Below, in pieces: positions 3,555 through 40,715 of a stretch of 64,000 bases of DNA; position 1 is the first letter of the stretch, and every line of letters starts with the position of its first letter. The position numbers and the translations under genes are program-made. Where the stretch lies: positions 309,884-373,883 of the forward strand of contig MU008180.1 of assembly GCA_010909165.1 (NCBI GenBank), given 5' to 3'. This DNA is from Anthoceros angustus. Its lineage: Eukaryota > Plantae > Anthocerotophyta. The notes beneath the pieces are model-generated. The model ran no database searches and was not told the origin of the DNA. It worked only from the letters and a program-made list of their open reading frames with translations.

Positions 3555-3912
3555 CTGAAGCGGAAGATTACAGTTGGCATTTGCGATTCTGAAGATTGGA
3601 GCACCGAATTACTGTGAGCATATCCAAATTTCCCTGTCCACGCCAATTTTTCCTTGTTGTTTGTTGTTGGCATGGACGCACCCTCTTGCATATCATGTGC
3701 ACCAGGGGGCGCTTTGAGACGCGCGCTGAAGGGCGACCATATGCGAGGGCGAGGACTTGCGCATGCCACGGCCATGAGCCACGGCATATGCTTGTGCCTC
3801 GGCCATGAGCCATGGCATATGCTTATGCCTTGGCCATTAGCCGTGGCACATGCTGATGCCTCGGCCATGTCCTTGCCCATGGCCGTGGCACATGCTGATG
3901 CCTCGGCCATGT
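3437..3912 (+). repeat. ~31-bp minisatellite (cctcggccatgagccatggcatatgcttgtg) in two clusters
   Basis: About 2 copies at 3437-3490 and about 5 diverging copies at 3765-3912. Confidence 0.8.
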
Positions 3913-11183: not shown

Positions 11184-11294
11184 GTTGTCACACTCGCTAT
11201 TGAGGGGCTCACAGCATGGCAACAAATATGTGATATCATTCGACATATTCATGTCCAAAGAACTCAAATTTTCTTGTGGGCGCAAGGACCGATC

Positions 11295-12573
11295 CTCGAG
11301 CTTGTACTCGCTTGAGTTGCCACGTGCCATAGTTCTTTCCGTCGAGTTGTATTCGCACGCACTTTGCAAAATTTTCTTCACGAGATCCCGCCATGAATGA
11401 GACAAACTTCATTCATGTGAGAACGCTAGGATGCCAATCATATTGCAGCAGCTCTAGACTGAATATGGATTCATATGCATGACACTATACGCACTACAGT
11501 GCTGATCAACCTCCGCGACAAGGTCCTTCAATTTCCAATAAGGATTGCGTTCAAACAGTTGAAAACTTCCTCTTCTACCTCCATCTCTGCGCATCCTCCT
11601 CCTTGGTTTTGGAAGCTCTTGGCTCCTCTTCTTACCCTCACCGATGAGCATATGCTCGTTAAGATGATTGGTTACGAATGCATAGATAGTGGTGCATAGA
11701 AGTGCGGTATAAATTATTGGGAGTCGGGAAAGAAAAAGACACGCACATCCATTAAGCTCATTTAAGTCATAACCTCGAGCTATCGGATCATTCCTCAAAG
11801 ACCGTGAGACCAGGAAACAACTTTAACATGTATGGACTAGCAATCGGGCAAAGGTGAAGGAGGTCTCCAATTGCTACAAGCTATACACCTTTGAAGTTTT
11901 TCTACCGCCCTCTCCTCTCCCGCAAACCGCCATACACGTGCAAATCGCTCACGCCATCATAGCGCGCATGTGGAATATGTCCTTCATCGCTCCCTCCACG
12001 CAAGCGTACGCATAGGGTATGCACGCGTCATGTTCAAGAAAGCGACCTTTACCTCACCTCAATTGCAACACGGCCCGAAAGTTGCATGCAACCACCACGC
12101 CAAATTTCAACCAAAGACGCTACCAACCAACAACGTTAACCACAAATCGCCATACCCTATGCTAGCAATTACCGTCGGTGCCAAAAGAAAATGACAACAT
12201 CGATGGGAGATACTCGGATCGATTGACCAACGATGATCCCATCCTTCCCACCGCTTAATGCATACAAGCATGGCAAGACAAAGAGTGAGCTCATCAATCC
12301 TCCCGGTAGTCTACTCATCGCCTATCAACAACCCTAGTGAACCTAGGGCCCGGAGAGAGCGATGTGGCGCCATGGTATGACTGTGGAGGAGCCTTTGTGC
12401 AGATCAATCGCGACGGTCATGATACCTGTGGGGCTCCTCGCGATCCGCACGTAGTCGCTTCTCCCATCGCCGCCAAGTCGGGTGAAATTTTGAGCAACAT
12501 ATGTTCTTCCCGGACCTTGTAGTATCCAGCATTTCACAGGAAAATCAATCATCGCGCTGCTCACATAGGCCAT
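11295..12573 (-). pseudogene. RAP30: TFIIF beta paralog A, local tandem duplicate 1b
   Basis: Positions 11215-12600 repeat 9785-11215. Same shared frameshift. Confidence 0.7.
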
Positions 12574-13329
12574 GTTGTCACACGCTATTGAGGGGCTCAC
12601 AGGACTAGGCAACAATTAAAGGGTTTAATCGCTTTCTCCCTCAAGCCGGATTTCAAGCATATATAGACCGGCCGGGGTATAGCCTCGAATCAGAATCTCA
12701 GGACAAACTCATATACGGTTGTAGTTATCGAGATTAATATCGTATTCAAAGCGAATGAACCCAAATGCATATTTTGCGCATCGGAGCTAGCTCTTGGACC
12801 TCGGGCGACGCACTCATATTAATGAATGAATGCCCGACATTCATTTGCATCTGCAAGCGAGATCATCTCAGTGCTTTTACTCTCCAAGAGATGCATCCAT
12901 GCGGCAGCAGTATCGCCTTTTCTGTCTGCAAATTCTGCTCAATCGCGAACGGCGAACACAACGGAATAGAGATTGTCGGGCCGGAGAGCGCCCGTTAGTC
13001 AGTCACTGCTCATTATGATTACGCTTTGTGGCAGGAGTAGAAACAATGGCCTGGGAAGCTTGTGCTGGACCTGCTTTATGAATGCATCATGTGGGGCTGT
13101 ACGTGTGCAGGAAACCAAGGCTGGGCAGCCCCAAAGTTGAAGGAGGACAGTGCTGACCAATTCAAAACTGTGTGAATGCAAAGGAGGTACAGCCAAGGAT
13201 GCATAAGCATGCTGTCTTTATTGTGTTGTTTCAGGTTTGCTGCTACAATTAAGTTTCATCAGATCCCTCTTGGTTGTGGCCCCGGGCCCATAAACTTGTA
13301 TGCCTTGTGTTTGGCTAACTGTAGCTGGT

Positions 13330-13700
13330 AGTCACGATGCGCACCATGCACCAGAAGTGCCGGCTTGTGCATACCGACCTCAGCAAATAAAACGTTTTTG
13401 TACCTTGAGGTGAGCTCTCGCGTGCATTCATGAAAGCCAAATTAATGTGGAATTGAGTGTGGCTCAAGTGAGCCTTACTAGATGAATCCCAATCACCGAA
13501 GATGGAATGGAGCTGGACACCAATCTGTTGCCCAAACATGTCCGTCGAAACATCTCCACATCTGGTTCAGTCCAAGCATACGGCCCTGTACTTACGAAGG
13601 GCTTTCTCCTTCCTACCACCTGCCCTGCTGGGAATACCCCGCCATCATGGCATTCCAAGTCAGCCGGTGCCTGCACGGCTCCCTCTGCTGTGCAGGAACA
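13330..13700 (-). pseudogene. Decayed PPR-like remnant; also near 24700-25060, 49420-49790 and 60070-60430
   Basis: Minus-strand pieces LTWNAMMAGYSQQG, then EKALRKYRAVCLD and EPD in neighbouring frames. These resemble the PLS-PPR motif WNAMI.GY.Q.G..EEAL.L...M...G..PD. Confidence 0.45.
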
Positions 13701-14593
13701 CGCAGATAGCATCCGGCAGGAGTCCGGCTCCAACACCGGCGTCCGTCACGGCTACGAGGAAGGCGTTCAGATCCGGTGTTCCGAATGGTGGTATCGCTGG
13801 GGATGCTGCAGAATCCCTGATGCAGGTTGGCATGTTTCTGTGGCGGCGTTGGCGACCAAAGGCTTCAATCAATGCCTGGCGAGATTCCTATCATGGGACC
13901 TCGGACAGTTGCAAAAATATTACAGTACTAACATTACAGTACTAACATTGAACAGAAGTATGATCCTGTTACAGCAGATGATTCGCATCGATCACCCAGT
14001 CACCGGCCTTGTGAATCTTGCCTGGGATTTACGTTGTTCAAGGCTTTCATGGTGTTGACAAAGAAATCCAGGTGACATTATCATCTTCTCCACGATCGTC
14101 ACTCGCGCGTGCACCTTGCCATTGGGAAGCTTGAATCTCCGTCAGCTCGCTGATCATGACGAACGCCCGCGTTGGAGGAGCGAACGTTGACGATCCGCCC
14201 GGTGGACAGGTAACAGACTCTATGCCCAAGTGAACCGCACTGGAAGCAGGCGGTGTCATCCACCTTGGCGATGACGATCCCGTGGTTGTCGAGGAAGGAG
14301 TGATTTGTGGGTGCCCCTGTGTTGCGTTGCGTTCCACTGCTCGATCATTCCCTTTGCAAAATAGGTCCGCGTTCAAGAAAAGGAGCTGCACACAGCTATT
14401 GAATGATGTGGTCCAATCTCCTCAAGCTTAAGGAAACGGAGGGAAAATGACGTGTAATAAATCCTGTAAAGGAAACACCCTACCACTCAAACCTCACTGA
14501 CTGCCTCAAAACGCCTCCCTTACGCTGTACATGCATGGTGGGGAGAGATCCTCCTTCCGGCCTTGGGAAAATGCTCCCACAAGGACCGACTGA

Positions 14594-15977
14594 TCAACCA
14601 GGATCTATCCTGTGGACGCAGGCAGGGCATCCCCTGCCGAACAGGGGCTTGTATTCGGGCTTCAACTCGTAGGTTCCTTGGTTGGTCCCGCCTTTATTGT
14701 ATACACAGAGATCCTTCAAAATCTCCTTCAGGAAATTCTGCCATGAGACAAACTTCGCACATGTGAGAACTAGGATGCCAATTATATTGCAGCAGGTCCG
14801 ATAGAGATACGCCATACTTACCACGGGCTGATTAGTTTCCTTGATAAGGTTCTTCAATTCCCAGTTAGGATTCTCTTCGAACAGTTTGAAAACCCTGGCT
14901 TCTACATTCGAGGGCTCTCCGCGAAACCGCCTCTCTTTTTTCTTTTGGAGCCTCTCGGCAGCCGTTCAGACCCTGAGGAGATGTACATGCGCTCGTAAGA
15001 TGCTATGTTACGGACAGTTGCAGACAGTGCTGCATAGGAGCGCGGTATTGACTGGAAGTGATTCGGAAAGAAAGACAGCTGTAACACCTGCCTCTCCACC
15101 CGAAGCTCCAGATTGCGGCCCCATATGCGTGCCATGATGATCCTCCAGCATCTGAGGCCAGGGAACATATTTAACATGCATAGACTAGTTATCAGGGCAA
15201 AGGTGAAGGAGGTCTCCAATTGCAAGCTGTAAACCTACTTGTAAAGTTCGTCTGCCGCTGGCCTTCCTTTGCCTCTCCCGGTAAAGCTTGCCATACTTAT
15301 TCAAGTCGGTCAGCCCATCGCGCTGCATGTCGAATTTTCTTGTCACCGTTCCCTCCGCTGCAAGCTTACCTGCAGAGGGTATGCACGCGTCATGCTCAGA
15401 AATTTGACCTCCCACCACAACAGGGGCTCGAAAGTTGCACCCAACACCAATTCGTCAGCCCAACCAGCCTGCTACCACCCAATTAACAACATTTGGCCAT
15501 AGCGCATGTTAGCAATTACCGTCAGCTGCCTCAGAAAATACGCACATCGCGCCAAAGTGCTTCACCGAATTAAGCTCATACTTGGTCGGTGATAACTCTC
15601 CATCCTTCCGGGCACCTGCAAGGAATACTGCGCAAGCATGGCCAGAGTGAGGTCATCCTCGACGTCTACTCACAGGTCTCTACAACCCTAGCTAAACAAA
15701 CCGCGCCGATAGCTGGGAGCGAGCGGGAATGCGATGTGGTGTCTGTCATGGCACCTTTGGAAGAGCCTGAGGGTTGAGCAGATCCCAAGCAACAGTCATC
15801 CGACCCACTGGCTCTGTGCTTCCTGCATCGCGCCTCTGCTCCCATGACTTCGGCAGCTCATGATCAGCTGGAACCTTGAGCAAGAAAGCATTGCGCCTGG
15901 CCCTTGTAGTATTCAGTTGTATCTCAGGCAGCCGCCGAGGCATCAGTTTCGTCATCGCTGCCTTGTACACCGGCCAT
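14594..15977 (-). CDS. RAP30: TFIIF beta subunit (RAP30)-like paralog B, array copy 1
   Basis: Exons LNTTRARRNAFLLKVP, KYELNSVKHFGAMCVFSE, GKLAAEGTVTRKFDMQ..YGKLYRER, MLEDHHGTHMGP, RVFKLFEENPNWELKNLIKETNQP and NFLKEILKDLCVYNKGGTNQGTYELKPEYK, separated by short GT-AG introns. Frame near the ATG and at a poly-T run depends on 1-2-nt indels that vary between copies. Confidence 0.85.
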
Positions 15978-16499
15978 GTTGTCTCGCTGTGAGACCTTGA
16001 GGGGCTCACGGCTGTAGGCGACCAGCTGCAGGGAACGATGCAAGGGTTTGTTCGAGCCGGGGTTTTCAAGCATATATCGGCTGCGGGCTTAGGACTTCGA
16101 AATCAGAATCTCGGACAAAGGCACACGTATGCTTATCGCGATTCTACCGAAAGTGAATGAAACGAACTGCATATATATTTGGGGCAGCGTCGCTGTCCCC
16201 AACTGGAGCTTGAGCGACGCAGTCTGATTACGAAATGAGCCTCCCGCGCCAATCTGTAGACACGCGACTCATCTCAATGCTTTCTCTCCAGAGATGAATC
16301 GATGCAGGAGCATGATCGCTTATTCTGTCGGTGAATTCTGCTCCAACTGCCTGATCCTTTGAACTGGAAGGCTATAAGGACTGACTCGTTTGAGCTGGAA
16401 GGTTGGAAACATGGCTGCGACACCAGAAGGTAACAACGAGATGGCGAATGGAATGACAGACTGGCTCAGGGTGATGGAAGGCTCAGGCTGAGGACTTTC

Positions 16500-17110
16500 C
16501 AGGTGAGCTGGGAGGAGGTGAAATGGGAGTGGAACACGGATGAGAAAGCCTACCCTTGTCCAATTTCGATCGAGCTGAGTTCTGCAGGTCTCATTGCATA
16601 AATTCAAGACCTGGGACTGTACCATATTCTTAGTCACTGTGCTTCCAATTGCAAGCAAAGAGCTGGGGAACTAAGACAACGGAGGCTAGGGTTCCAATCA
16701 TTCTCGATTCTTGTTACAAGTGTGTTCAAGTTGGCTCTTGTGTAGGAGGATGGGGAGGAAGGGAACATGCTGGTGGTCGGGGACTCCATCAATTCAACCA
16801 GGAGGTGTTCGTGATTTTGGTGAACCACATCGTGGTAAGCAAACCAATTAGGTGGAGAGCGCCCTTGACCTCGGGAGTGTGGCACATAGCTGGGACATCA
16901 TCAGGTCTGCAAAGATGTGCTTGGGGACAGGGATTCCGCGTGGAGAATGTAAGAGATGACAGACTAGACTGTCTGTCATCCAGTGGATGGACGAGGACAA
17001 GGTCAAGCAATCACATGGAGTATCCATGGATCAAGCTTGTGGAGCCCTGCAACATCTCGTCTTGGTGCTCACCAGACGAGCGCACTTTGAGAATGATGCC
17101 AAATTTACAG
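16500..17110 (+). pseudogene. TBL/PC-esterase-like remnant; also at ~29090-29700, ~36200-36810, ~52590-53200 and ~63240-63850
   Basis: VKWEWNTDE / LSNFDRAEFCR / RMGRKGNMLVVGDSIN / LVLVLTRRAHFEND resemble the TBL KWRW.P..C.LPRFD...FLE..RGK.L.FVGDS and NRGAH motifs. Frameshifted. Confidence 0.55.
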
Positions 17111-17285
17111 CTTGAGACCAAATTTCAATATGCGCATAATCCAAATCCTAACAACAACGTACCATTGTCATTGCAGTGAAGTACCGAGGTGATAAAATAT
17201 TATACTTGTATGTACATAGTTAGAGTGGCAGGTGCATTTAGTATCCAAAAGTAGGTAAGAATTAGGCTTCGGCGGCGGTCCCATA

Positions 17286-19707
17286 ATGCGCACCATCAAG
17301 GCCGCGCGAAACGAAACGTCTCAGTATCGTCTCAAGCTCCTTCCTCAGCATCTCCTTCTGCATTCTCTGCATCCATCGATTCGCTTGAAGCCGGAATGGA
17401 TATGGACGGTGCCGCAACTGCTGGGGCCAAAGGATTGGGACTCGGCTGATGCTGCCGGGGAAATCCGATACACGCAGTCCAGGATTTCGACGGTCTTCTC
17501 CAAGAGGAAAGCGCTCTCCGCTTGCTCCACTTTGCGGGACTTGCTGAGAGGCTTCGGCGTGGAGACTTGGCTGTGACAGACGTGTCCCCGATCCGTGTGG
17601 TGATGCACGAAGGCGTCCCCTACAGCCTGGACAACAGGAGGCTTTGGGTGTTCAAGGAGCTCAGGAAGCCCATTCCGGTGAAAGTCCTCTCCTTGGAGGA
17701 GTGCGGGAAGGAGTTCTTCCAAAAGTGGGACTCCAAATCCTCGGGGAACAGCGTGTCGCTCAACGAGGAGTGGGATCGGAAGGAGAAGTTTCACCCAACG
17801 CAGATGGTGAACCATATCCTGAGCTGGTCGCTGGAGAACGTGCAGACAAAGTGGCTGCACGTGAACAAGGTAGTGGTTTGGATTGGTGTAATGAGGTTGT
17901 GTGAAGTAGGAGAAACGGGTCTGATCATGCTGGTTTGAGGACTGAGTGTTGGGTTTGGTGTGCTGTGCACTCTGGGTGGCACAGGCAAAGCCGATTGGAC
18001 TCACGTTCGACTCCATGGAGCAGTATGTGACGGGCTTTAAGTGGCCTCTGCTGGAGGAGACAAGGCGCCATTCAACAGCAGCTGGAGGAAATCGGAGCCG
18101 CGCCCCGATTCCATGTCTCGGGCCGACAACTCGCGATCGGACATGCTGCTGGTAGTCATGACGCTCGATTGAAAACACTTGAGCTCGAGGTGTCAGGAGG
18201 GACTTACCAACCCAGAAGCAACGATCTGGTTCTGTTCTCAACAGTAGACCCAAAGGGTCTTCATGCCCTTCATAGGGCGTCCACATGTTTGGCTTCCTTA
18301 GGCGTAAGGTGAGCAAGCTTGGAGGCTGTCAAGGTAACTTGCATTTCAAGACTGTAGTATATGCACCGGATGAGAGTCCGGAGTATGCTGCTCTGCGGGA
18401 TGGCAAGGCAACATGGACCATTCTCCACATCACCAACTTAGCTACGACTATTAGGATTTGGGACAGTTTGGAGCTACTGTATCGTAATTCTAAATCTGAA
18501 GTACTTGCATTACCAGTACTGCAAGATATTCTCCAGGCGGACTATAACTGCTCGGTATGCTTTACACCGTATGGGATAATCTCGTGGTGGTTCTGAAGTC
18601 TGGAGGTCATTCTATTTTCTTATCACATGAACTTACATTACTGTTATCATGGCTCACTGCAGTTTGTTATCAGCTTGCAGACAACCTGATCATGTTCGGA
18701 TGGAAATTTGGTTTGATGTTTTGTGCACAGGTGCCCAGGTGCCAACATATGGCTTTTGATGAAGTAGAGCTGCCACTCAGGAAATACTGTGAGGATGTCA
18801 GAGCCATGAATCAGTCCCAAGTGGAAGCAGTCGTAGATGCAGTGTCTGGACTTGTGAACCGAGTTGGACCACGAGTAAGACTGATCCAAGGTCCGCCAGG
18901 GACGGGAAGACTACCCTGCTGGTATCTCTGCTGTCTATACTTTCCAGCATGAACTACAGAGTCCACATGTCTGCACCAACCAACACAGCCATTTGTGAGG
19001 TTGCTTCCAGGTTTGTGTCACAGATGTTGGTCTCTAAGCACAACAATGTCCAGTTTGGTGCTTGTTTCCCGGATTTGAGGATTCGTGGACGCGAAGGAAG
19101 CAGGATGTTGAATTTGGGAGACGTAGTGCTTATTGGGCGCGAGGAGGCAATAGACCTCAAGACCCACAAAGTGCTGGAATATATTTATCTGCCCCATAGC
19201 AAACACATTGAAGGAATCAGCTTTGTGTTTTGTCACTGCCTATAAGAAATGTGCCGAGGCGCTCAGAAAATTCCTGCAGTGTGCGTTAGGAGAGTATGTG
19301 AGGCATTCCAAAGTTTTAGCGGCCGCTCACAACAGGGAAGAGTCACGACCATTAGCCACTTTCGTGAGGAAGAATTTGGAGGTCCTGATTTCGTCTATGG
19401 TCCACCATGGTCATATCATGTGCCAGGACGTCTCAAGTGTTTTCTCAGCTCTCAAACAAAGAAGGGCGCCCGTCATATTGTAGTCCTCAGAGAGAAACTT
19501 CTTGGGTATTTCGATTTGCATGATCTTTCTCATGAACACATAAGCATATGGCTGTCCGAAACACACGCCGAATTTTACTCATTCTGGACTCCTGTAGACT
19601 GCCGAGTTATAGTATGCTTGCAGGACAACAAAGAAGCGAAGTGGTCTGCCACTTTTCTGGAGGAGTCGACTGTGGCGCAACGCAACCTGGGAGCGGAGGA
19701 CTTGTGA
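17286..19707 (+). CDS. ParB/Srx-like domain fused to a DUF6469-type region and the N-terminal half of a Upf1/Sen1-like SF1B helicase; 3 exons, frameshifted and C-terminally truncated; copy 1
   Basis: Exon 1 (to 17869): EIRYTQSRISTVFS...PIRVVMHEGVPYSLDNRRLWVFKEL. Phase-0 intron 17870-17984. Exon 2: FDSMEQYVTGFKWPLLEETRA..YQPRSNDLV..HITNLATTIRIWDSL. Phase-0 intron 18555-18730. Exon 3: MNQSQVEAV..LIQGPPGTGK(T)..SAPTNTAICEVASR. No DEAAQ or later helicase motifs were found. Confidence 0.75.
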
Positions 19708-20029
19708 GAAAAGTGACGCAAACACAGGCGCGTGAGGCCAGGAAAGTTTGTTGTGAAAAGGCGCGCTAGGTGGTGGTTGAGCTGAGAATTGTGAAGGCAT
19801 GGCAAGTTGGAGAGGAGCTAGGGGGCGAGAGATTGCTGAGGAAGAGGAGCTGTCTTTTGGCAAGTGTTGGCGGGGAGTTTGTGGGGTTTTGTTCCAGCCT
19901 GAGGAAGGGAGCCCTCTTGATTAACGACCTTGGTGCCTTTTTCTTTGCTCACTCTTCCTCTCTAGCCGCCTGATAGGTTGCTCTCCCTACCCTCCCAAAT
20001 TCCATCCTTGTGTGTGCTCCTTTTGTGCA

Positions 20030-21500
20030 GATGGTGAAGATTGTTAGGACGGGTGGTGGCACCCCAACTCAAGGCGATAGCAGAAAGGCAGTGCCGCCAC
20101 ACCTCCCGTCGAGGCAAAGGCAAAAACATCGATCCCATGCCCGAGTTCGACTACCGCCCCATCCAAATTTCACCTCGAGACTTGAATGCTTTCGAGCGTG
20201 CGGAGGAATTGAAGATGGAGTGGTTGTATTTGGCGCTGGATGGCACTTTTCAAGCCCAGCATTGGTGCGGAGTGTGCACGGTTGCGAGCCACGAGGAGAA
20301 GCAAGGACACCAAGATGTCATAGTCCCGAGTCACCACAGGCGTGGAAGGTGCGCCATTTTCACCGACATATTTCATACCCGAGGCGCACTAGGAGGGATC
20401 ATCCCATGCCCGCTTTTCTAAGAATCGATCCAGAAGTGGCCATGGATATGTTCCTCGACCCAAGAAGGAAGTTTGGTCTCCGGTAATGGTTGGCGAGTTT
20501 CCATATTCAAAGAAAAGGAAGTGGAACTGTTCTCCAAGATTTGGTTGGGATTGATTTTTGCGGAAGACCTACATAAGCAATTCCCACCTCATGATGATCT
20601 ATGAAATGTCCAAGGGCAAGTGGCGATTAGGCGAGCATCCTCTATGAGCAAGCGGTAGCTCATAGGAATCATTTGATGAGTGAGGAGGCCAAAATTAGTT
20701 TTGTCTCCACCTTCCTAGTGCATCTATACCATAGGGAGGAACTTCTTAAGGAGGAGGAACTGGAGGAAGCTAAGGCAGGCTTCCTTGGTCCGAGTGGTGG
20801 CGCCCCTCTTAACCGGTTTCTTTTCTTGTCAGATTTCACCTTAGGATCAGTGCTTGTTGCTTGTTGGCATCTTGCAGGCACTCGAGACTTGAATGCTTTC
20901 GATGCGGGAGGAATTGAAGATGGATGGTTGTATTTGGCGCTGGATGGCACTTTTCAAGCCCAGCATTGGTGCGGAGTGTGCACACGGTTGCGAGCCACGA
21001 GAGGAGAAGCAAGGACACCAAGATGTCATAGTCCCGAGTCACCACAGGCGTGGAAGGTGCGCCATTTTCAGCGGACATATTTCATACCCGAGGCGCACTA
21101 GGAGGGATCATCCCATGCCCGCTTTTCTAAGAATCGGATCCGAAGTGGCCATGGATATGTTCCTACAGAAGGAAGTTTGGTCTCCGGTAATGGTTGGCGA
21201 GTTTCCATATTCAAAGAAAAGGAAGTGGAACTGTTCTCCAAGATTTGGTTGGGATTGATTTGCGCCCGCCAGAAGACCTACATAAGCAATTCCCACCTCA
21301 TGATGATCTATGAAATGTCCAAGGTGCAGTTAGTGAGCATCCTCTATGAGCAAGCGGTAGCTCATAGGAATCATTTGATGAGTGAGGAGGCCAAAATTAG
21401 TTTTGTCTCCACCTTCCTAGTGCATCTATACCATAGGGAGGAACTTCTTAAGGAGGAGGAACTGGAGGAAGCTAAGGCAGGCTTCCTTGGTCCGAGTGGT
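20030..21500 (+). mobile_element. Degraded retroelement-associated ORF (plant transposon-protein-like), with ~700-bp internal duplication in this copy; also 39730-40406 + 46148-46280 and 56120-56920
   Basis: WNLFSKIWLGLICAARKTYISNSHLMMIYEMSKGKLADWASILYEQ..FVSTFLVHLY resembles accessory ORFs of plant gypsy elements. Heavily frameshifted; followed by the 125-bp repeats. Confidence 0.4.
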
Positions 21501-22589
21501 GGCGCCCCTCTTAACCGGTTTCTGTTTTCTTGTATTTCACCTTAGGATCGGCTGTGCTTGTTGCTTGTTGGCATCTTGCGAGGCACCTGAGACTCGTTTT
21601 AAGCAACCTATCGGGAGCTTCCTAACCCAAGAGCGCTCACGTTGTAGGTAATCTCGTGGCTGCCCAAGTGAAAATCCATCGATTTCGGCCACTCTAGGCG
21701 TTGGTGCTGCAAGAGCGACTTGAGAGGTTGTTAAGAATAGATCTAGTGGATGGTTGTGGAAGAAGGTATGAGATTGAGTTATTGGGTTCTCTCGTCGTTG
21801 TAGTGTTTTTCCGTGGTCTTAGAAGTTAGGGGAACGGAAGGCTCAAGTTGGGGCCGTACAAGAAACCCAAAACCCATATTCGGTGAGGCAATTTGTGACA
21901 AAGAAGGAATTGTGAGAGAGCAAGAATCGACCCCTCGTGATAAGCGTATCCACCAAGTCTCTTGGAATCGAACCCACGATTCGACGATGGGACAAGTGTG
22001 GCCACCGGGCTAGCTCGGGGTGATCGGGCGAACCTACCACAGAGAGTGAGAATCGACGTGGATAAGCGCATCCAAACAAGTCTCTTGGGATCGAACCCAC
22101 GATTCGACGACCACCGTGGATAAGTGTGGCCACCGGGCTAGCTCGGGGTGACGGGTGAATCCACCACAACACATCTCGCAGATCGCAAATCCAGCACCAC
22201 ATGCACGATGAACCGTACTTGAATCGATATCACCTTTTTTTTTTTCTTGTGTTATTTCTCATAGATCAAATAGTACCTATTCAGATTTGTTTCTAGAGGA
22301 TCACTTACCGAGCTGCTTCACACGGTTTCTAGGTATGCCTCAAGTTACCGCCCTATCAAAAACCTCGAAACTCGCAGTGAGGCGAACTTCCGCAGTTGGC
22401 CCCTCCGTTGCATCTGATTGAGGAGTCCCTCCAGCGCCCAGACAAGACTTAATAGCCTTCTCAACCATAGTTTTGCTGATCTAGTCGGCCACAGAGGACC
22501 ATAGATGTTATGGCAACAAATATGTGATATCATTCGACATATTCATGTCCAAAGAACTCAAATTTCTTGTGGGGCGCAAGGACCGATCC

Positions 22590-23931
22590 TCGAGCTTGTA
22601 CTGCTTGAGTTGCCACGTGCCATAGTTCTTTCCGTCGAGTTGTATTCGCACGCACTTTGCAAAATTTTCTTCACGAGATCCCGCTGAATGAGACAAACTT
22701 CATTCATGTGAGAACGCTAGGATGCCAATCATATTGCAGCAGCTCTAGACTGAATATGGATTCATATGCATGACACTATACGCACCACAGTGATCAACCT
22801 CCGCGACAAGGTCCTTCAATTTCCAATAAGGATTGCTCAAACAGTTGAAAACTTCCTCTTCTACCTCCATGGAATCTCGCATCCTCCTCCTTGGTTTTGG
22901 AAGCTCTTGGCTCCTCTTCTTACCCTCACTCGATGAGCATATGCTCGTTAAGATGATTTGTTACGGACAGTCGCATGCATAGATAGTGGTACATAGAAGT
23001 ACGGTATAAATTATTGGGAGTCGGGAAAGACAGGCAAGATACCGTACCTGTCCATTAAGCTCATTTAAGTCATAACCTCGAGCTATCGGATCATTCCTCA
23101 AAGACCGTGAGACCAGAAACAACTTTAACATGTATGGACTAGCAATCGTGGCAAAGGTGAAGGAGGTCTCCAATTGCTACAAGCTATACACCTTTGAAGT
23201 TTTTCTAACGCTGGTTCCTCTCCCTCTCCGCAAACGCGCCATACACGTGCAAATCGCCACGCCATCATAGCGCGCATGTGGAATATGTCCTTCACTGTTC
23301 CCTCCGCTGCAAGCGTACCTGCATAGAGTATGCACGCGTCATGTTCAAGAAAGCTGACCTTTACCTCACCTCAATTGCAACACGGCCCGAAAGTTGCATG
23401 CAACCACCACTTCGCCAGCCCAACCAGCACGCCTGTGCTACCAATCAACAATGTTAACCACAAATCGCCATACCCTATGCTAGCAATTACCGTCAGGTGC
23501 CACAGAGAATGACAACAGCGATGGCAGATACTCTCAGGATCGATTGACCAGCGCATACGTGGTTGGTGACTGTCCATCCTTCCCGGGCACCGTTAAGGTG
23601 TGCTGCACAAGCATGGCAAGACAAAGAGTGAGCTCATCAATCCTCCTAGTAGTCTACTCATCACCTCTATCAACAACCCTAGTGAACCTAGGGCCGGAGA
23701 GAGCGATGTGGCGTTGCCATGGTATGACTGTGGAGGAGCCGTAGGCTTGTGCAGATCAATCGCGACGGTCATGATACCTGTGGGGCTCGCGATCCGCACG
23801 TAGTCGCTTCTCCCATCGCCGCCAAGTCGGGTGAAATTTTGAGCAACATATGTTCTTCCCCGACCTTGTAGTATCCAGCAGTGTTTCAGCTGGCCAGAAA
23901 ATCAATCATCGCTGCTGCTCACATAGGCCAT
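22590..23931 (-). pseudogene. RAP30: TFIIF beta paralog A, array copy 2
   Basis: Colinear with A0; shared frameshifts. Confidence 0.75.
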
Positions 23932-25956
23932 GTTGTCACACTCCTGCTATTGAGGGCTCACGCAGCTGACTAGGCAACAATTAAAGGGTTTAATCGCTTT
24001 CTCCCTCAAGCCGGATTTCAAGCATATATAGACCGGCCGGGGTATAGCCTCGAATCGAATCTCAGGACAAACTCATATACGGTTGCTTAGTTATCGAGAT
24101 TAATATCGTATTCAAAGCGAATGAACCCAAATGCATATTTTGCGCATCGGAGCTAGCTCTTGGACCTCGGGCGACGACTCATATTAATGAATGAATGCCC
24201 GACATTCATTTGCATCTGCAAGCGAGATCATCTCAGTGCTTTTACTCTCCAAGAGATGCATCCATGCGGCAGCAGTATCGCCTTTTCTGTCTGCAAATTC
24301 TGCTCAATCGCGAACGGCGAACACAACGGAATAGAGATTGTCGGGCCGGAGAGCGCCCGTTAGTCAGTCACTGCTCATTATGATTACGCTTTGTGGCAGG
24401 AGTAGAAACAATGGCCTGGGAAGCTTGTGCTGGACCTGCTTTATGAATGCATCATGTGGGGCTGTACGTGCAGGAAACCAAGGCTGGGCAGCCCCAAAGT
24501 TGAAGGACGCAGTGCTGACCAATTCAAAACTGTGTGAATGCAAAGGAGGTACAGCCAAGGATGCATAAGCATGCTGTCTTTATTGTGTTGTTTCAGGTTT
24601 GCTGCTACAATTAAGTTTCATCAGATCCCTCTTGGTTGTGGCCCCTGGGCCCATAAACTTGTATGCCTTGTGTTTGGCTAACTGTAGCTGGTAGTCACGA
24701 TGCGCACCATGCACCAGAAGTGCCGGCTTGTGCATACCGACCTCAGCAACAAACGTTTTTGTACCTTGAGGTGAGCTCTCGCGTGCATTCATGAAAGCCA
24801 AATTAATGTGGGAATTGAGTGTGGCTCAAGTGAGCCTTACTAGATGAATCCCAATCACCGAAGATGGAATGGAGCTGGACACCAATCTGTTGCCCAAACA
24901 TGTCCGTCGAAACATCTCCACATCTGGTTCAGTCCAAGCATACGGCCCTGTACTTACGAAGGGCTTTCTCCTTCCTACCACCTGCCCTGCTGGGAATACC
25001 CCGCCATCATGGCATTCCAAGTCAGCCGGTGCCTGCACGGCTCCCTCTGCTGTGCAGGAACACGCAGATAGCATCCGGCAGGAGTCCGGCTCCAACACCG
25101 GCGTCCGTCACGGCTACGAGGAAGGCGTTCAGATCCGGTGTTCCGAATGGTGGTATCGCTGGGGATGCTGCAGAATCCCTGATGCAGGTTGGCATGTTTC
25201 TGTGGCGGCGTTGGCGACCAAAGGCTTCAATCAATGCCTGGCGAGATTCCTATCATGGGACCTCGGACAGTTGCAAAAATATTACAGTACTAACATTACA
25301 GTACTAACATTGAACAGAAGTATGATCCTGTTACAGCAGATGATTCGCATCGATCACCCAGTCACCGGCCTTGTGAATCTTGCCTGGGATTTACGTTGTT
25401 CAAGGCTTTCATGGTGTTGACAAAGAAATCCAGGTGACATTATCATCTTCTCCACGATCGTCACTCGCGCGTGCACCTTGCCATTGGGAAGCTTGAATCT
25501 CCGTCAGCTCGCTGATCATGACGAACGCCCGCGTTGGAGGAGCGAACGTTGACGATCCGCCCGGTGGACAGGTAACAGACTCTATGCCCAAGTGAACCGC
25601 ACTGGAAGCAGGCGGTGTCATCCACCTTGGCGATGACGATCCCGTGGTTGTCGAGGAAGGAGTGATTTGTGGGTGCCCTGTGTTGCGTTGCGTTCCACTG
25701 CTCGATCATTCCCTTTGCAAAATAGGTCCGCGTTCAAGAAAAGGGAGCTGCACACAGCTATTGAATGATGTGGTCCAATCTCCTCAAGCTTAAGGAAACG
25801 GAGGGAAAATGACGTGTAATAAATCCTGTAAAGGAAACACCCTACCACTCAAACCTCACTGACTGCCTCAAAACGCCTCCCTTACGCTGTACATGCATGG
25901 TGGGGAGAGATCCTCCTTCCGGCCTTGGGGAAAATGCTCCCACAAGGACCGACTGA

Positions 25957-27320
25957 TCAACCAGGATCTATCCTGTGGACGCAGGCAGGGCATCCCCTGC
26001 CGAACAGGGCTTGTATTCGGGCTTCAACTCGTAGGTTCCTTGGTTGGTCCCGCCTTTATTGTATACACAGAGATCCTTCAAAATCTCCTTCAGGAAATTC
26101 TGCCATGAGACAAACTTCGCACATGTGAGAACTAGGATGCCAATTATATTGCAGCAGGTCCGATAGAGATACGCCATACTTACCACGGGCTGATTAGTTT
26201 CCTTGATAAGGTTCTTCAATTCCCAGTTAGGATTCTCTTCGAACAGTTTGAAAACCCTGGCTTCTACATTCGAGGGCTCTCCATGAAACCGCCTCTCTTT
26301 TTTCTTTTGGAGCCTCTCGGCAGCCGTTCAGACCCTGAGGAGATGTACATGCGCTCGTAAGATGCTATGTTACGGACAGTTGCAGACAGTGCTGCATAGG
26401 AGCGCGGTATTGACTGGAAGTGATTCGGAAAGAAAGACAGCTGTAACACCGTACCTCTCCACCCGAAGCTCCAGATTGCGGCCCCATATGCGTGCCATGA
26501 TGATCCTCCAGCATCTGAGGCCAGGGAACATATTTAACATGCATAGACTAGTTATCAGGGCAAAGGTGAAGGAGGTCTCCAATTGCAAGCTGTAAACCTA
26601 CTTGTAAAGTTCGTCTGCCGCTGGCCTTCCTTTGCCTCTCCCGGTAAAGCTTGCCATACTTATTCAAGTCGGTCAGCCCATCGCGCTGCATGTCGAATTT
26701 TCTTGTCACCGTTCCCTCCGCTGCAAGCTTACCTGCAGAGGGTATGCACGCGTCATGCTCAAGAAATTTGACCTCCCACCACAACAGGGGCTCGAAAGTT
26801 GCACCCAACACCAATTCGTCAGCCCAACCAGCCTGCTACCACCCAATTAACAACATTTGGCCATAGCGCATGTTAGCAATTACCGTCAGCTGCCTCAGAA
26901 AATACGCACATCGCGCCAAAGTGCTTCACCGAATTAAGCTCATACTTGGTCGGTGATAACTCTCCATCCTTCCGGGCCGTTAAGGTGTCTTGCACAAGCA
27001 TGGCCAGAGTGAGGTCATCCTCGACGTCTACTCACAGGTCTCTACAACCCTAGTGAACCTAGGGCCCGGAGAGAGCGATGTGGTGTCTGTCATGGCACCT
27101 TTGGAAGAGCCTGAGGTTGAGCAGATCCCAAGCAACAGTCATCCGACCCACTGGCTCTGTGCTTCCTGCATCGCGCCTCTGCTCCCATGACTTCGGCAGC
27201 TCATGATCAGCTGGAACCTTGAGCAAGAAAGCATTGCGCCTGGCCCTTGTAGTATTCAGTTGTATCTCAGGCAGCCGCCGAGGCATCAGTTTCGTCATCG
27301 CTGCCTTGTACACCGGCCAT
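25957..27320 (-). CDS. RAP30: TFIIF beta paralog B, copy 2, with patches of paralog A sequence in its 5' part
   Basis: 3' exons are as in copy 1. A-type patches lie at 26978-27000 and 27054-27083. Confidence 0.7.
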
Positions 27321-30300
27321 GTTGTCACACTCACGCTATTGAGGGGCTCGCAGCTGACTAGGCAACAATTAAAGGGTTTAATCGCTTTCTCCCTCAAGCC
27401 GGATTTCAAGCATATATCGGCTGCGGGCTTAGGACTTCGAAATCAGAATCTCGGACAAAGGCACACACGTATGCTTATCGCGATTCTACCGAAAGTGAAT
27501 GAAACGAACTGCATATATAGGCCGGGGTATAGCCTCGGAATCGAATCTCAGGACAAACTCATATACGGTTGCTTAGTTATCGAGATTAATATCGTATTCA
27601 AAGCGAATGAACCCAAATGCATATTTTGCATCGGAGCTAGCTCTTGGACCTCGGGCGACGCACTCATATTAATGAATGAATGCCCGACATTCATTGCATC
27701 TGCAAGCGAGATCATCTCAGTGCTTTTACTCTCCAAGAGATGCATCCATGCGGCAGCAGTATCGCCTTTTCTGTCTGCAAATTCTGCTCAATCGCGAACG
27801 GAACACAACGGAATAGAGATTGTCGGGCCGGAGCGCCCGTTAGTCAGTCACTGCTCATTATGATTACGCTTTGTGGCAGGAGTAGAAACAATGGCCTGGG
27901 AAGCTTGTGGAGCCCTGCAACATCTCGTCTTGGTGCTCACCAGACGAGCGCACTTTGAGAATGATGCCAAATTTACAGCTTGAGACCAAATTTCAATATG
28001 CGCATAATCCAAATCCTAACAACAACGTACCATTGTCATTGCAGTGAAGTACCGAGGTGATAAAATATTATACTTGTATGTACATAGTTAGAGTGGCAGG
28101 TGCATTTAGTATCCAAAAGTAGGTAAGAATTAGGCTTCGGCGGCGGTCCCATAATGCGCACCATGCACCAGAAGTGCCGGCTTGTGCATACCGACCTCAG
28201 CAAATAAAACGTTTTTGTACCTTGAGGGGCTCACGGCTGTAGGCGACCAGCTGCAGGGAACGATGCAAGGGTTTGTTCGAGCCGGGGTTTTCAAGCATAT
28301 ATCGGCTGCGGGCTTAGGACTTCGAAATCAGAATCTCGGACAAAGGCACACACGTATGCTTATCGCGATTCTACCGAAAGTGAATGAAACGAACTGCATA
28401 TATATTTGGGGCAGCGTCGCTGTCCCCAACTGGAGCTTGAGCGACGCAGTCTGATTACGAAATGAGCCTCCGCGCCAATCTGTAGACACGCGACTCATCT
28501 CAATGCTTTCTCTCCAGAGATGAATCGATGCAGGAGCATGATCGCTTATTCTGTCGGTGAATTCTGCTCCAACTGCCTGATCCTTTGAACTGGAAGGCTA
28601 TAAGGACTGACTCGTTTGAGCTGGAAGGTTGGAAACATGGCTGCGACACCAGAAGGTAACAACGAGATGGCGAATGGAATGACAGACTGGCTCAGGGTGA
28701 TGGAAGGCTCAGGCTGAGGACTTTCCAGGTGAGCTCTCGTGCATTCATGAAAGCCAAATTAATGTGGGGAATTGAGTGTGGCTCAAGTGAGCCTTACTAG
28801 ATGAATCCCAATCACCGAAGATGGAATGGAGCTGGACACCAATCTGTAGACACGCGACTCATCTCAATGCTTTCTCTCCAGAGATGAATCGATGCAGGAG
28901 CATGATCGCTTATTCTGTCGGTGAATTCTGCTCCAACTGCCTGATCCTTTGAACTGGAAGGCTATAAGGACTGACTCGTTTGAGCTGGAAGGTTGGAAAC
29001 ATGGCTGCGACACCAGAAGGTAACAACGAGATGGCGAATGGAATGACAGACTGGCTCAGGGTGATGGAAGGCTCAGGCTGAGGACTTTCCAGGTGAGCTG
29101 GGAGGAGGTGAAATGGGAGTGGAACACGGATGAGAAAGCCTACCCTTGTCCAATTTCGATCGAGCTGAGTTCTGCAGGTCTCATTGCATAAATTCAAGAC
29201 CTGGGACTGTACCATATTCTTAGTCACTGTGCTTCCAATTGCAAGCAAAGAGCTGGGGAACTAAGACAACGGAGGCTAGGGTTCCAATCATTCTCGATTC
29301 TTGTTACAAGTGTGTTCAAGTTGGCTCTTGTGTAGGAGGATGGGGAGGAAGGGGAACATGCTGGTGGTCGGGGACTCCATCAATTCAACCAGGAGGTGTT
29401 CGTGATTTTGGTGAACCACATCGTGGTAAGCAAACCAATTAGGTGGAGAGCGCCCTTGACCTCGGGAGTGTGGCACATAGCTGGGACATCATCAGGTCTG
29501 CAAAGATGTGCTTGGGGACAGGGATTCCGCGTGGAGAATGTAGAGATGACAGACTAGACTGTCTGTCATCCAGTGGATGGACGAGGACAAGGTCAAGCAA
29601 TCACATGGAGTATCCATGGATCAAGCTTGTGGAGCCCTGCAACATCTCGTCTTGGTGCTCACCAGACGAGCGCACTTTGAGAATGATGCCAAATTTACAG
29701 CTTGAGACCAAATTTCAATATGCGCATAATCCAAATCCTAACAACAACGTACCATTGTCATTGCAGTGAAGTACCGAGGTGATAAAATATTATACTTGTA
29801 TGTACATAGTTAGAGTGGCAGGTGCATTTAGTATCCAAAAGTAGGTAAGAATTAGGCTTCGGCGGCGGTCCCATAATGCGCACCATCAAGGCCGCGCGAA
29901 ACGAAACGTCTCAGTATCGTCTCAAGCTCCTTCCTACCACCTGCCCTGCTGGGGAATACCCCGCCATCATGGCATTCCAAGTCAGCCGGTGCCTGCACGG
30001 CTCCCTCTGCTGTGCAGGAACACGCAGATAGCATCCGGCAGGAGTCCGGCTCCAACACCGGCGTCCGTCACGGCTACGAGGAAGGCGTTCAGATCCGGTG
30101 TTCCGAATGGTGGTATCGCTGGGGATGCTGCAGAATCCCTGATGCAGGTTGGCATGTTTCTGTGGCGGCGTTGGCGACCAAAGGCTTCAATCAATGCCTG
30201 GCGAGATTCCTATCATGGGACCTCGGACAGTTGCAAAAATATTATACTTGTATGTACATAGTTAGAGTGGCAGGTGCATTTAGTATCCAAAAGTAGGTAA

Positions 30301-33300
30301 GAATTAGGCTTCGGCGGCGGTCCCATAATGCGCACCATCAAGGCCGCGCGAAACGAAACGTCTCAGTATCGTCTCAAGCTCCTTCCTCAGCATCTCCTTC
30401 TGCATTCTCTGCATCCATCGATTCGCTTGAAGCCGGAATGGATATGGACGGTGCCGCAACTGCTGGGGCCAAAGGGATTGGGACTCGGCTGATGCTGCCG
30501 GGGAAATCCGATACACGCAGTCCAGGATTTCGACGGTCTTCTCAAGAGGAAAGCGCTCTCCGCTTGCTCCACTTTGCGGGACTTGCTGGAGGCTTCGGCG
30601 TGGAGACTTGGCTGTGACAGACGTGTCCCCGATCCGTGTGGTGATGAAGGCGTCCCCTACAGCCTGGACAACAGGAGGCTTTGGGTGTTCAAGGCTTTCA
30701 TGGTGTTGACAAAGAAATCCAGGTGACATTATCATCTTCTCCACGATCGTCACTCGCGTGCACCTTGCCATTGGGAAGCTTGAATCTCCGTCAGCTCGCT
30801 GATCATGACGAACGCCCGCGTTGGAGGAGCGAACGTTGACGATCCGCCCGGTGGACAGGTAACAGACTCTATGCCCAAGTGAACCGCACTGGAAGCAGGC
30901 GGTGTCATCCAGTGGATGGACGAGGACAAGGTCAAGCAATCACATGGAGTATCCATGGATCAAGCTTGTGGAGCCCTGCAACATCTCGTCTTGGTGCTCA
31001 CCAGACGAGCGCACTTTGAGAATGATGCCAAATTTACAGCTTGAGACCAAATTTCAATATGCGCATAATCCAAATCCTAACAACAACGTACCATTGTCAT
31101 TGCAGTGAAGTACCGAGGTGATAAAATATTATACTTGTATGTACATAGTTAGAGTGGCAGGTGCATTTAGTATCCAAAAGTAGGTAAGAATTAGGCTTCG
31201 GCGGCGGTCCCATAATGCGCACCATCAAGGCCGCGCGAAACGAAACGTCTCAGTATCGTCTCAAGCTCCTTCCTCAGCATCTCCTTCTGCATTCTCTGCA
31301 TCCATCGATTCGCTTGAAGCCGGAATGGATATGGACGGTGCCGCAACTGCTGGGGCCAAAGGGATTGGGACTCGGCTGATGCTGCCGGGGAAATCCGATA
31401 CACGCAGTCCAGGATTTCGACGGTCTTCTCAAGCGCTCTCCGCTTGCTCCACTTTGCGGGACTTGCTGGAGAGGCTTCGGCGTGGAGACTTGGCTGTGAC
31501 AGACGTGTCCCCGATCCGTGTGGTGATGCACGAAGGCGTCCCCTACAGCCTGGACAACAGGAGGCTTTGGGTGTTCAAGGCTTTCATGGTGTTGACAAAG
31601 AAATCCAGGTGACATTATCATCTTCTCCACGATCGTCACTCGCGTGCACCTTGCCATTGGGAAGCTTGAATCTCCGTCAGCTCGCTGATCATGACGAACG
31701 CCCGCGTTGGAGGAGCGAACGTTGACGATCCGCCCGGTGGACAGGTAACAGACTCTATGCCCAAGTGAACCGCACTGGAAGCAGGCGGTGTCATCCAGTG
31801 GATGGACGAGGACAAGGTCAAGCAATCACATGGAGTATCCATGGATCAAGCTTGTGGAGCCCTGCAACATCTCGTCTTGGTGCTCACCAGACGAGCGCAC
31901 TTTGAGAATGATGCCAAATTTACAGCTTGAGACCAAATTTCAATATGCGCATAATCCAAATCCTAACAACAACGTACCATTGTCATTGCAGTGAAGTACC
32001 GAGGTGATAAAATATTATACTTGTATGTACATAGTTAGAGTGGCAGGTGCATTTAGTATCCAAAAGTAGGTAAGAATTAGGCTTCGGCGGCGGTCCCATA
32101 ATGCGCACCATCAAGGCCGCGCGAAACGAAACGTCTCAGTATCGTCTCAAGCTCCTTCCTCAGCATCTCCTTCTGCATTCTCTGCATCCATCGATTCGCT
32201 TGAAGCCGGAATGGATATGGACGGTGCCGCAACTGCTGGGGCCAAAGGGATTGGGACTCGGCTGATGCTGCCGGGGAAATCCGATACACGCAGTCCAGGA
32301 TTTCGACGGTCTTCTCAAGCGCTCTCCGCTTGCTCCACTTTGCGGGACTTGCTGGAGAGGCTTCGGCGTGGAGACTTGGCTGTGACAGACGTGTCCCCGA
32401 TCCGTGTGGTGATGCACGAAGGCGTCCCCTACAGCCTGGACAACAGGAGGCTTTGGGTGTTCAAGGAGCTCGGAAGCCCATTCCGGTGAAAGTCCTCTCC
32501 TTGGAGGAGTGCGGAAGGAGTGATTTGTGGGTGCCCCTGTGTTGCGTTGCGTTCCACTGCTCGATCATTCCCTTTGCAAAATAGGTCCGCGTTCAAGAAA
32601 AGGGAGCTGCACACAGCTATTGAATGATGTGGTCCAATCTCCTCAAGCTTAAGGAAACGGAGGGAAAATGACGTGTAATAAATCCTGTAAAGGAAACACC
32701 CTACCACTCAAACCTCACTGACTGCCTCAAAACGCCTCCCTTACGCTGTACATGCATGGTGGGGAGAGATCCTCCTTCCGGCCTTGGGAAAATGCTCCCA
32801 CAAGGACCGACTGATCAACCAGGAGGTGTTCGTGATTTTGGTGAACCACATCGTGGTAAGCAAACCAATTAGGTGGAGAGCGCCCTTGACCTCGGGAGTG
32901 TGGCACATAGCTGGGACATCATCAGGTCTGCAAAGATGTGCTTGGGGACAGGGATTCCGCGTGGAGAATGAGATGACAGACTAGACTGTCTGTCATCCAG
33001 TGGATGGACGAGGACAAGGTCAAGCAATCACATGGAGTATCCATGGATCAAGCTTGTGGAGCCCTGCAACATCTCGTCTTGGTGCTCACCAGACGAGCGC
33101 ACTTTGAGAATGATGCCAAATTTACAGCTTGAGACCAAATTTCAATATGCGCATAATCCAAATCCTAACAACAACGTACCATTGTCATTGCAGTGAAGTA
33201 CCGAGGTGATAAAATATTATACTTGTATGTACATAGTTAGAGTGGCAGGTGCATTTAGTATCCAAAAGTAGGTAAGAATTAGGCTTCGGCGGCGGTCCCA

Positions 33301-34724: not shown

Positions 34725-35678
34725 GTGCTGCATAGGAGCGCGGTATTGACTGGAAGTGATTCGGAAAGAAAGACAGCTGTAACACCGTACCTCTCCACCC
34801 GAAGCTCCAGATTGCGGCCCCATATGCGTGCCATGATGATCCTCCAGCATCTGAGGCCAGGGAACATATTTAACATGCATAGACTAGTTATCAGGGCAAA
34901 GGTGAAGGAGGTCTCCAATTGCAAGCTGTAAACCTACTTGTAAAGTTCGTCTGCCGCTGGCCTTCCTTTGCCTCTCCCGGTAAAGCTTGCCATACTTATT
35001 CAAGTCGGTCAGCCCATCGCGCTGCATGTCGAATTTTCTTGTCACCGTTCCCTCCGCTGCAAGCTTACCTGCAGAGGGTATGCACGCGTCATGCTCAAGA
35101 ATTTGACCTCCCACCACAACAGGGGCTCGAAAGTTGCACCCAACACCAATTCGTCAGCCCAACCAGCCTGCTACCACCCAATTAACAACATTTGGCCATA
35201 GCGCATGTTAGCAATTACCGTCAGCTGCCTCAGAAAATACGCACATCGCGCCAAAGTGCTTCACCGAATTAAGCTCATACTTGGTCGGTGATAACTCTCC
35301 ATCCTTCCGGGCACCTGCAAGGAATACTGCGCAAGCATGGCCAGAGTGAGGTCATCCTCGACGTCTACTCACAGGTCTCTACAACCCTAGCTAAACAAAC
35401 CGCGCCGATAGCTGGGAGCGAGCGGGAATGCGATGTGGTGTCTGTCATGGCACCTTTGGAAGAGCCTGAGGGTTGAGCAGATCCCAAGCAACAGTCATCC
35501 GACCCACTGGCTCTGTGCTTCCTGCATCGCGCCTCTGCTCCCATGACTTCGGCAGCTCATGATCAGCTGGAACCTTGAGCAAGAAAGCATTGCGCCTGGC
35601 CCTTGTAGTATTCAGTTGTATCTCAGGCAGCCGCCGAGGCACATCAGTTTCGTCATCGCTGCCTTGTACACCGGCCAT
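34716..35678 (-). CDS. RAP30: TFIIF beta paralog B, 5' and middle exons only; the one copy with an in-frame N-terminus (MAGVQGSDDETDVPRRLPEIQLNTTR)
   Basis: ORF 35445-35678; the 3' exons are lost at the junction at 34716-34724. Confidence 0.7.
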
Positions 35679-40616: not shown

Positions 40617-40715
40617 AAGTATCGAGGCACAGTCGATCGGTGCAACCGATCATGGCCTTGGGCTTAGGGTAGGAATGTTCTAACGCGTTTATTGTGTGTC
40701 ATTAGAAGGTCCGCC

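Follow-up and report, generated by a model that had tools for sequence, protein, structure and literature searches.

A truncated, tandemly amplified and probably dead fragment of a toxin-type ParB-like domain-helicase gene in Anthoceros angustus

The Tox-ParBL1 domains were defined by Zhang, de Souza, Anantharaman, Iyer and Aravind (2012, Biol Direct 7:18, PMC3482391), who linked them to Thermus ParB by HHpred and predicted for them a ParB fold, with a conserved N-terminal Ser/Thr that classical ParB lacks and an [NT][RT][RT] motif, mostly RR, instead of the GERR/DGHHR of ParB. In bacteria the domain forms the C-terminal warhead of polymorphic toxins of the RHS and filamentous-haemagglutinin types, the eukaryotic carriers include Viridiplantae, and the domain was seen as an acquisition separate from sulfiredoxin (Srx) (PMC3482391). 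In CdiA-CT ToxB the warhead behind the VENN motif has a ParB-CTPase fold without DNA-binding domains, and it binds and hydrolyses ATP; this toxin was found via Pfam PF02195, the classical ParB_N branch (Tox-ParB) (bioRxiv 10.64898/2026.05.05.722872). Here we analyze a ParBL1-type domain joined to a Upf1/Sen1-like superfamily 1 (SF1) helicase in a 64-kb stretch of DNA from Anthoceros angustus (Anthocerotophyta; assembly GCA_010909165.1, contig MU008180.1, positions 309,884 to 373,883), called the window below, whose own numbering is used throughout.

Very probably, a dead 5' fragment of a streptophyte gene for a ParBL1-DUF6469-SF1 helicase was recently amplified in tandem at this locus, in units of about 10.6 kb. 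The region of copy A (17286-19707 and flanks) was compared with the whole window by BLASTN, and three near-full copies 99.4-99.6% identical were found in segments 17001-20000 (A), 36704-39702 (B) and 53093-56093 (C). The copies themselves occupy 17286-19707, 36989-39410 and 53378-55800, respectively, all on the plus strand, and share one set of gene parts: IRYTQ...SLDNRRL, GT-AG introns, a DUF6469-like stretch, Walker A and motif Ia; copy B has indels of its own in exons 1 and 2. The first-pass annotation of this DNA had counted three near-full copies and one partial copy. The three near-full copies and the partial one at 33557-34724 were recovered, but BLASTN revealed four partial copies in the window, all on the plus strand: the exon-1 fragments D (30236-30694) and E (30903-31580), each with the upstream region and exon 1 as far as LWVFK, fragment F (31789-32521), with the upstream region and most of exon 1, and fragment G (33557-34724), which runs from the second half of exon 1 through intron 1 and exon 2 into intron 2. 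The repeat unit with copy A (11216-20889) is matched by units at 47286-57016 and, in part, at 34712-40406, 20881-27519 and 56270-64000, arranged head to tail.

In copy A, exon 1 (17286-17869) encodes the ParBL1-type domain, with IRYTQSRIS from 17463, PIRVV...SLDNRRLWVFKE from about 17585 and LDNRRL from 17627 (SLDNRRL at about 17624-17644), and ends with LHVNK followed by GT (17858-17871). Intron 1 (17870-17984, 115 nt, GT..AG) is in phase 0, and its AG acceptor ends at 17984, directly before AKPIG (AKPIGLTFDSMEQY...PLLEETRA, with EETR from 18054). Exon 2 (17985-18554) is the DUF6469-like region and reads AKPIGLTFDSMEQY...EETRA, then IQQQLEE...ADYNCS. Exon 3 (18731-19707, stop codon 19705-19707) holds the start of SF1 helicase domain 1A and an inserted 1B/1C-like region, with GPPGTG of QGPPGTG(K) from 18890 and SAPTNTA from 18970. 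The 176-nt GT..AG intron 2 between them (18555-18730) is putative, and is suggested also by donor-like and acceptor-like sites at the matching place of the closest relative's genomic contig (L001). In copy B, exon 3 (38247-39407, stop 39408-39410, plus strand) is a single open frame of 387 codons that reads through intron 2. The motifs quoted for copy A in the first-pass annotation were all found at their positions. Its run-on quotation of exon 1 was correct in the motifs but concealed frame breaks behind its dots, IRYTQSRIS and PIRVV...SLDNRRL lying in different frames of copy A.

Domain searches were run on the separate exons. The exon-3 frame of copy B matched AAA_11 in Pfam (E=8e-12), with only positions 2-81 of the 257-position profile covered, and exon 2 of copy B gave a weak match to DUF6469 (PF20073) of 15.7 bits (E=0.015), under the gathering score of 27 bits. 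In relatives the same family scored 41.3 bits (P0003, above the cut-off) and 25.1 bits (L001, just under it), and the window is colinear with both in alignments. Motif I (Walker A) reads QGPPGTGKTT and motif Ia SAPTNTA in copies B and C; in copy A, an indel without support in the short-read contigs described below puts Walker A out of frame. The AAA_11 match in the window and the DUF6469 match above cut-off in P0003 bear out the earlier view that the downstream part is a Upf1/Sen1-like SF1 helicase with a DUF6469-type N-terminal region.

Intact proteins with the same arrangement were found in other streptophytes. Full-length fusions are encoded in Selaginella moellendorffii (EFJ34295.1 / D8QYT2, 2806 amino acids), Calypogeia fissa (CAM6124396.1, 2620 amino acids; CAM6084426.1, 1155 amino acids) and the alga Closterium (1219-2217 amino acids, including CAI5957752.1 with 1219). 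In these proteins a ParBL1-type domain is followed by DUF6469, AAA_11 and AAA_12 (motifs II-VI) and, in the long forms, by a UvrD-like helicase; a search for intact fusions with motifs II-VI in other plants had been proposed in the first-pass annotation. Exon 1 of the window is 38-44% identical to the full-length fusions and colinear with them across the intron-1 junction, where the homologues read NKVQPIPLRF, NQVDKIPLEF or DKVKEIPLSF and the window NK|AKPIGLTF. In L001, GT follows directly after the same AAG (Lys) codon, AG comes 75 nt further on, and an unbroken frame of 514 codons then runs across DUF6469 into the helicase. Judged by these alignments, the ParB-like domain and the helicase are truly fused in one gene, as had been proposed, and the fusion is old. 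None of the 20 HMMER matches (see below) whose source was looked up came from a seed plant.

The fusion proteins stand in the databases as hypothetical, unnamed or uncharacterized, or as 'UvrD-like helicase ATP-binding domain-containing protein'. The architecture had been put forward as one without a known description. This holds for the fusion, which exists only as unnamed database entries, but not for its domain family, Tox-ParBL1, published in 2012 with plants among the carriers (PMC3482391). The literature on ParBL1 or DUF6469 yielded no publication on a ParBL1-helicase fusion, only the 2012 Tox-ParBL1 paper surfacing, and the parts of that paper covered here do not discuss such a fusion. 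Thus the domain family and the helicase family are both known already, and the full-length fusion is public but unnamed.

Exon 1 belongs to no Pfam family, nor do its closest relatives, P0001 and P0002, and PF02195 (ParB_N) matched neither these nor the pieces from the window, even at E<=10. A profile of 70 family members found nothing among the PDB sequences at E<=10, and a sequence search of PDB returned chance-level rows only. A word-index protein search with the in-frame part of exon 1 (53593-53961) found two short open reading frames (ORFs), 52% and 40% identical, both ending at an LHVNK-type boundary; the length window of this search restricted it to these two. The closest natural relative, P0001:30-188, which is 52% identical to exon 1 of the window, served as a HMMER query against 1.84 billion representative proteins and gave 105 matches of two kinds. 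In the first, the domain is N-terminal in large DUF6469, AAA_11 and AAA_12 proteins, the long forms of which also have the UvrD-like helicase. In the second, a compact domain of about 100 residues lies C-terminal to RHS repeats, PT-VENN or DUF637, as in loci of Pseudomonas, Verrucomicrobiota and Acetivibrio genomes; these bacterial relatives are warheads of polymorphic toxins. One Pseudomonas locus (L006 2989-3556, Pseudomonas sp. NPDC078700) has a stand-alone ParBL1-type ORF of 102 codons, then an overlapping ORF of 98 codons, among small ORFs, and this row looks like an orphan toxin/immunity cassette array.

Since no window copy holds the whole domain in one frame, P0001:30-188 was folded by AlphaFold2 with a 70-sequence family alignment (A1). 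The model had a mean predicted local distance difference test (pLDDT) score of 79.9, with values above 93 in residues 1-20 and 51-110. Ranks 1-49 of the best 50 Foldseek matches were ParB, Noc, KorB, PadC, Srx, SerK, SbnI or other ParB-like proteins, rank 50 being the exception. With VIA-align, 31 ParB/Srx-type entries gave Z of 5.2-8.2 over model residues 1-111/123, among 56 chains with Z>=5. DNRR is placed where ParB carries GERR and Srx GCHR. The structural match list is uniform, the motifs correspond and a profile match to ParB has been published, so the ParB/Srx fold is the clear reading of exon 1 from the predicted structure, and together with the bacterial toxin-module relatives it agrees with the earlier proposal of a toxin-type domain. 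Some points weigh against this reading: no Foldseek match reached E<=0.001, the E-values being weak (0.03 at best); a Z of 7-8 is by itself within reach of unrelated folds; and the model is that of a relative with 52% identity, the window's own sequence being broken.

The conserved residues of the family are retained at the locus. Against the family consensus IRFTQxSIS, copy A reads IRYTQSRIS at 17463, as do five other copies at the equivalent positions. DNRRL is invariant or nearly so in the 70 aligned sequences, and SLDNRRL is present in seven window copies. Of the 11 near-invariant positions of the family, none is missing from the copies in the window. In motifs, toxin contexts and taxon range, exon 1 appears to match the published description of Tox-ParBL1; the assignment was made by published motifs, architectures and phyletic range and not by alignment with the type member, Neisseria gonorrhoeae NGK_2271. 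In a tree of the domain (70 sequences, 113 columns), the helicase-fused and long-linker sequences formed a group of 13 rows (Shimodaira-Hasegawa-like approximate likelihood ratio test, SH-aLRT, 90), and a separate group of 37 rows held the known toxin modules (SH-aLRT 94). Because this tree is unrooted and poorly resolved, it gives neither a donor nor a direction of transfer.

The copies in the window end within the helicase. Homology of copy A to full-length relatives stops near 19560, at about residue 670 of the 2620-amino acid Calypogeia homologue (P0107), before motif II. The remainder of AAA_11, AAA_12 and the UvrD part had no match in the 64 kb by TBLASTN with four full-length homologues, even at E<=5, and no helicase motif II-VI was found anywhere in the window. 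Since each copy stops before motif II, the copies could not unwind anything. Furthermore, no copy has an uninterrupted frame from a start codon through all exons. In the assembly, exon 1 of copy A is broken near 17431, 17500 and 17545.

Over 3 kb, copies A, B and C differ by a single substitution and by 18 indel events, 13 of which change a homopolymer run by 1 bp, so that most copy-specific 1-bp indels look like long-read assembly errors and not decay. This was confirmed in part by Logan contigs of the best DNA run, X1 (presumably short reads), aligned to the window. One X1 contig (4030 bp, depth 55.7) spans 17250-18665 without substitutions and differs from copy A by indels only, at 17431, 17500, 17545, 18063 and 18280; a second contig differs at 18903. 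Four of these six indels of copy A (17545, 18063, 18280 and 18903) are undone by the contigs, with the frame restored. The read-backed sequence is still off frame relative to intact relatives at about 17431, about 17500 and about 18064-18068. The length backed by reads at 17431 leaves the domain without an in-frame ATG, and that at 17286 lies in another frame. The break at about 17500 lies between ISTVFS and KRKALS, and that at about 18064-18068, between EETRA and IQQQLEE, is common to every copy and to the short-read contig; L001 reads through the same sites unbroken. Two more breaks, at 19194 and 19439, are putative. The earlier description of the copies as damaged is thus upheld as regards the truncation and the read-backed breaks, although much of the damage that separates the copies resembles assembly error.

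Because the copies end before motif II and carry frame breaks in exons 1 and 2 of the read-backed sequence, they are read as non-functional relics, and the presence of all 11 near-invariant residues indicates that their death was recent. The suggestion that a working member lies elsewhere is supported by the same truncation and breaks. Other observations count against the copies being dead. Logan contigs drop minority variants, and one real copy could keep the frame at 17431, 17500 or 19439, as A or B do in the assembly. The intact conserved residues fit a very recent death and also a working exon 1. No run on record as RNA contains the locus, and one run of the same sample, guessed to be RNA, aligned nothing, which does not show silence.

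These observations bear on a different explanation, in which all the breaks are sequencing errors and the copies still function, encoding a short protein of ParBL1, DUF6469 and an ATP-binding stub that might, for instance, regulate the full-length helicase or act as its decoy. The technical-error profile of the copy-specific indels, the contradiction of several of them by the short-read contig, the full set of conserved residues and the 387-codon open frame over exon 3 of copy B would all fit such genes. On the other hand, the short-read contig retains the breaks at about 17500 and 18064-18068, the latter in every copy, the read-backed length at 17431 deprives the domain of an in-frame ATG, and no RNA run containing the locus was found. 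Word searches with exon 1 or exon 3 found no protein of such shape (nothing above 44% identity for exon 3) in a collection that evidently does not include the species' own proteome. We consider working short genes very improbable and retain the reading of a recently dead fragment.

The number of real copies was estimated from X1. The main contigs have depths of 39-64, as against 12-18 for diverged-paralogue contigs, which show 9-13 differences per 100-185 bp; this suggests some 3-5 real copies plus family members elsewhere in the genome; the estimate is rough, depth being one figure per contig. Lower-depth X1 contigs at 18932-19031 and 19262-19446 (depth 12-16 versus 56-64) share 87-93% identity with exon 3, and one lower-depth paralogue contig ends loose with a Walker A-like stretch. 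Diverged helicase paralogues are thus present elsewhere in this genome. Runs X2 and X13, from two other organisms, gave pieces 90-99% alike, aligned mainly at 18400-19200, for the most part over exon 3 and to a small extent over exons 1 and 2; presumably these are close relatives that also have this gene family.

Fragments D-G all lie in a mosaic of 17 repeat-unit pieces at 27520-34724 (no strand assigned). Its pieces alternate between a backbone running forward from 12670 to 15015, with short gaps, and inserted fragments of the pseudogene 5' region. All 16 internal junctions fall in an exact word common to both sources, with a hard minimum of 9 bp: twelve words have 9 bp and the others 10, 11, 12 and 13 bp; a mismatch or an indel occurs in each of the two longest. 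The opening junction (27519/27520) has zero overlap. An assembly artefact could therefore account for part of the amplification, namely this scrambled block of 27.5-34.7 kb with D-G and possibly one full copy too. The junction words with their hard 9-bp minimum look algorithmic, the region has many homopolymer errors of assembly, the 4030-bp X1 contig runs unbroken across about 15 source break points, and X1 has no loose end at the six junction sites inside the aligned stretch. Graph cleaning may however remove low-coverage junction paths, so that the absence of junctions is weak evidence; serial microhomology-mediated template switching could look alike, and the mosaic pieces pass many common 9-mers unswitched. 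For the latter reason a small-k graph walk that switches at every common 9-mer was rejected. As to a full copy, the X1 depths point to several real ones, and the X1 contigs break where the copies differ (18664-18666, 19194), as expected with several real copies. For the mosaic itself the evidence leans towards an assembly artefact, with serial microhomology-mediated template switching possible; that an artefact explains part of the amplification is a real but rather doubtful alternative to the tandem amplification of a dead fragment.

The array also contains other elements. A Ty3/gypsy chromovirus-type retrotransposon (about 40400-46150) lies between two repeat units and interrupts the array; it has the domains RVT_1, RT_RNaseH, Tf2-1 SH3 and Chromo, with a reverse transcriptase/RNase H ORF at 42520-43515 and an integrase SH3 and chromodomain ORF at 45254-45958. 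A fragment of the TFIIF beta-subunit helix-turn-helix domain was found on the minus strand at 50682-51176 (E=8.6e-14), and weak matches to TFIIF-beta lie near 14703-14816, 26065-26178 and 61442-61555. A TFIIF-beta fragment thus sits beside the helicase fragment in each repeat unit, which makes the amplified unit a patchwork of gene pieces. Local tandem repeats occur at 1037-3561, 20174-21594 and 44000-45957, with periods of about 840, 710 and 975 bp and identities of 91-94%.

Such a patchwork, with its minus-strand TFIIF-beta piece and a Ty3/gypsy element inside the array, could suggest that a transposon of the Pack-MULE or Helitron type picked up and multiplied the gene fragment, instead of a segmental tandem duplication. 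Capture was rejected since terminal inverted repeats were not found, the full unit having no inverted repeat of at least 25 bp. In addition, the introns are kept, and head-to-tail units with a period of about 10.6 kb are the pattern of unequal crossing-over. Transposon capture is accordingly judged extremely unlikely, and segmental tandem duplication of the dead fragment is preferred.

In intact members of this gene, an N-terminal Tox-ParBL1 domain (IRF[ST]Q.S, DNRR and a predicted nucleotide-triphosphate-binding pocket) is followed by DUF6469 and then by a Upf1/Sen1-like SF1 helicase. In the scenario proposed here, the fragment would have lost the 3' part and gained the exon-2 frame break before amplification, the break probably predating the duplication because it is common to all copies, and the segment would then have been duplicated by unequal crossing-over. 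In intact members the ParB-like head may bind or hydrolyse nucleoside triphosphates (NTPs) via the DNRR arginines, as suggested by the modelled fold and by the ATP- and CTP-binding members of the superfamily, ToxB included. Coupled to a helicase engaged on nucleic acid, it could then act as a switch, an effector or an enzyme. The immune sensor-effector role proposed in the first-pass annotation is speculation, compatible with a toxin ancestry and with clustered copies of fast turnover. A bolder form would make the ParBL1-headed SF1 helicases an ancient streptophyte nucleic-acid conflict system, in which a sensor helicase carries an NTP-dependent effector head derived from a toxin and acquired from the polymorphic toxins of bacteria before land plants arose, the fragment array reflecting the birth-and-death turnover of an immune cluster; we regard this as unlikely.

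As dead fragments, the copies give the locus small biological weight. The assembly carries many homopolymer indel errors in repeats, and apparent pseudogenes or frames there need a short-read check before being called dead or alive. The locus adds a lineage to an unstudied family in which a toxin-warhead-type domain heads a large helicase, now in algae, liverworts, a lycophyte and Anthoceros angustus. Given an intact member, this family would be a reasonable target for studying the function of a toxin-type ParB fold inside a eukaryotic cell.

Compared with the full-length streptophyte fusions, the window has the same order of parts, but its copies are frameshifted and end at about residue 670 of the 2620-amino acid Calypogeia protein. 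The plant DUF6469/SEN1-like (Upf1-like SF1B) helicases resemble its downstream part in having DUF6469 and then AAA_11, with the Walker A GPPGTGKT and motif Ia APTN; to our knowledge, the usual seed-plant members have no ParB-like head. Sulfiredoxin, the common eukaryotic ParB-fold protein, is likewise a small single ParB/Srx-fold, ATP-binding protein and gave Z of 6.4-7.6 against the model (Arabidopsis 6ky4, human 1xw4 and 3cyi). Its active site is FSGCHR, with a catalytic Cys, whereas the window domain has SLDNRRL. ToxB is the nearest experimental model for the action of a toxin-type ParB fold but is not a family member, since it belongs to the PF02195 branch and the window domain and its relatives have no PF02195 match. 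Tox-ParBL1, on the other hand, shares with the window both the Ser/Thr motif (IRY-T-Q-S) and DNRR, although in the window the domain is N-terminal and intracellular, has a linker insertion of about 25 residues and is fused to a helicase.

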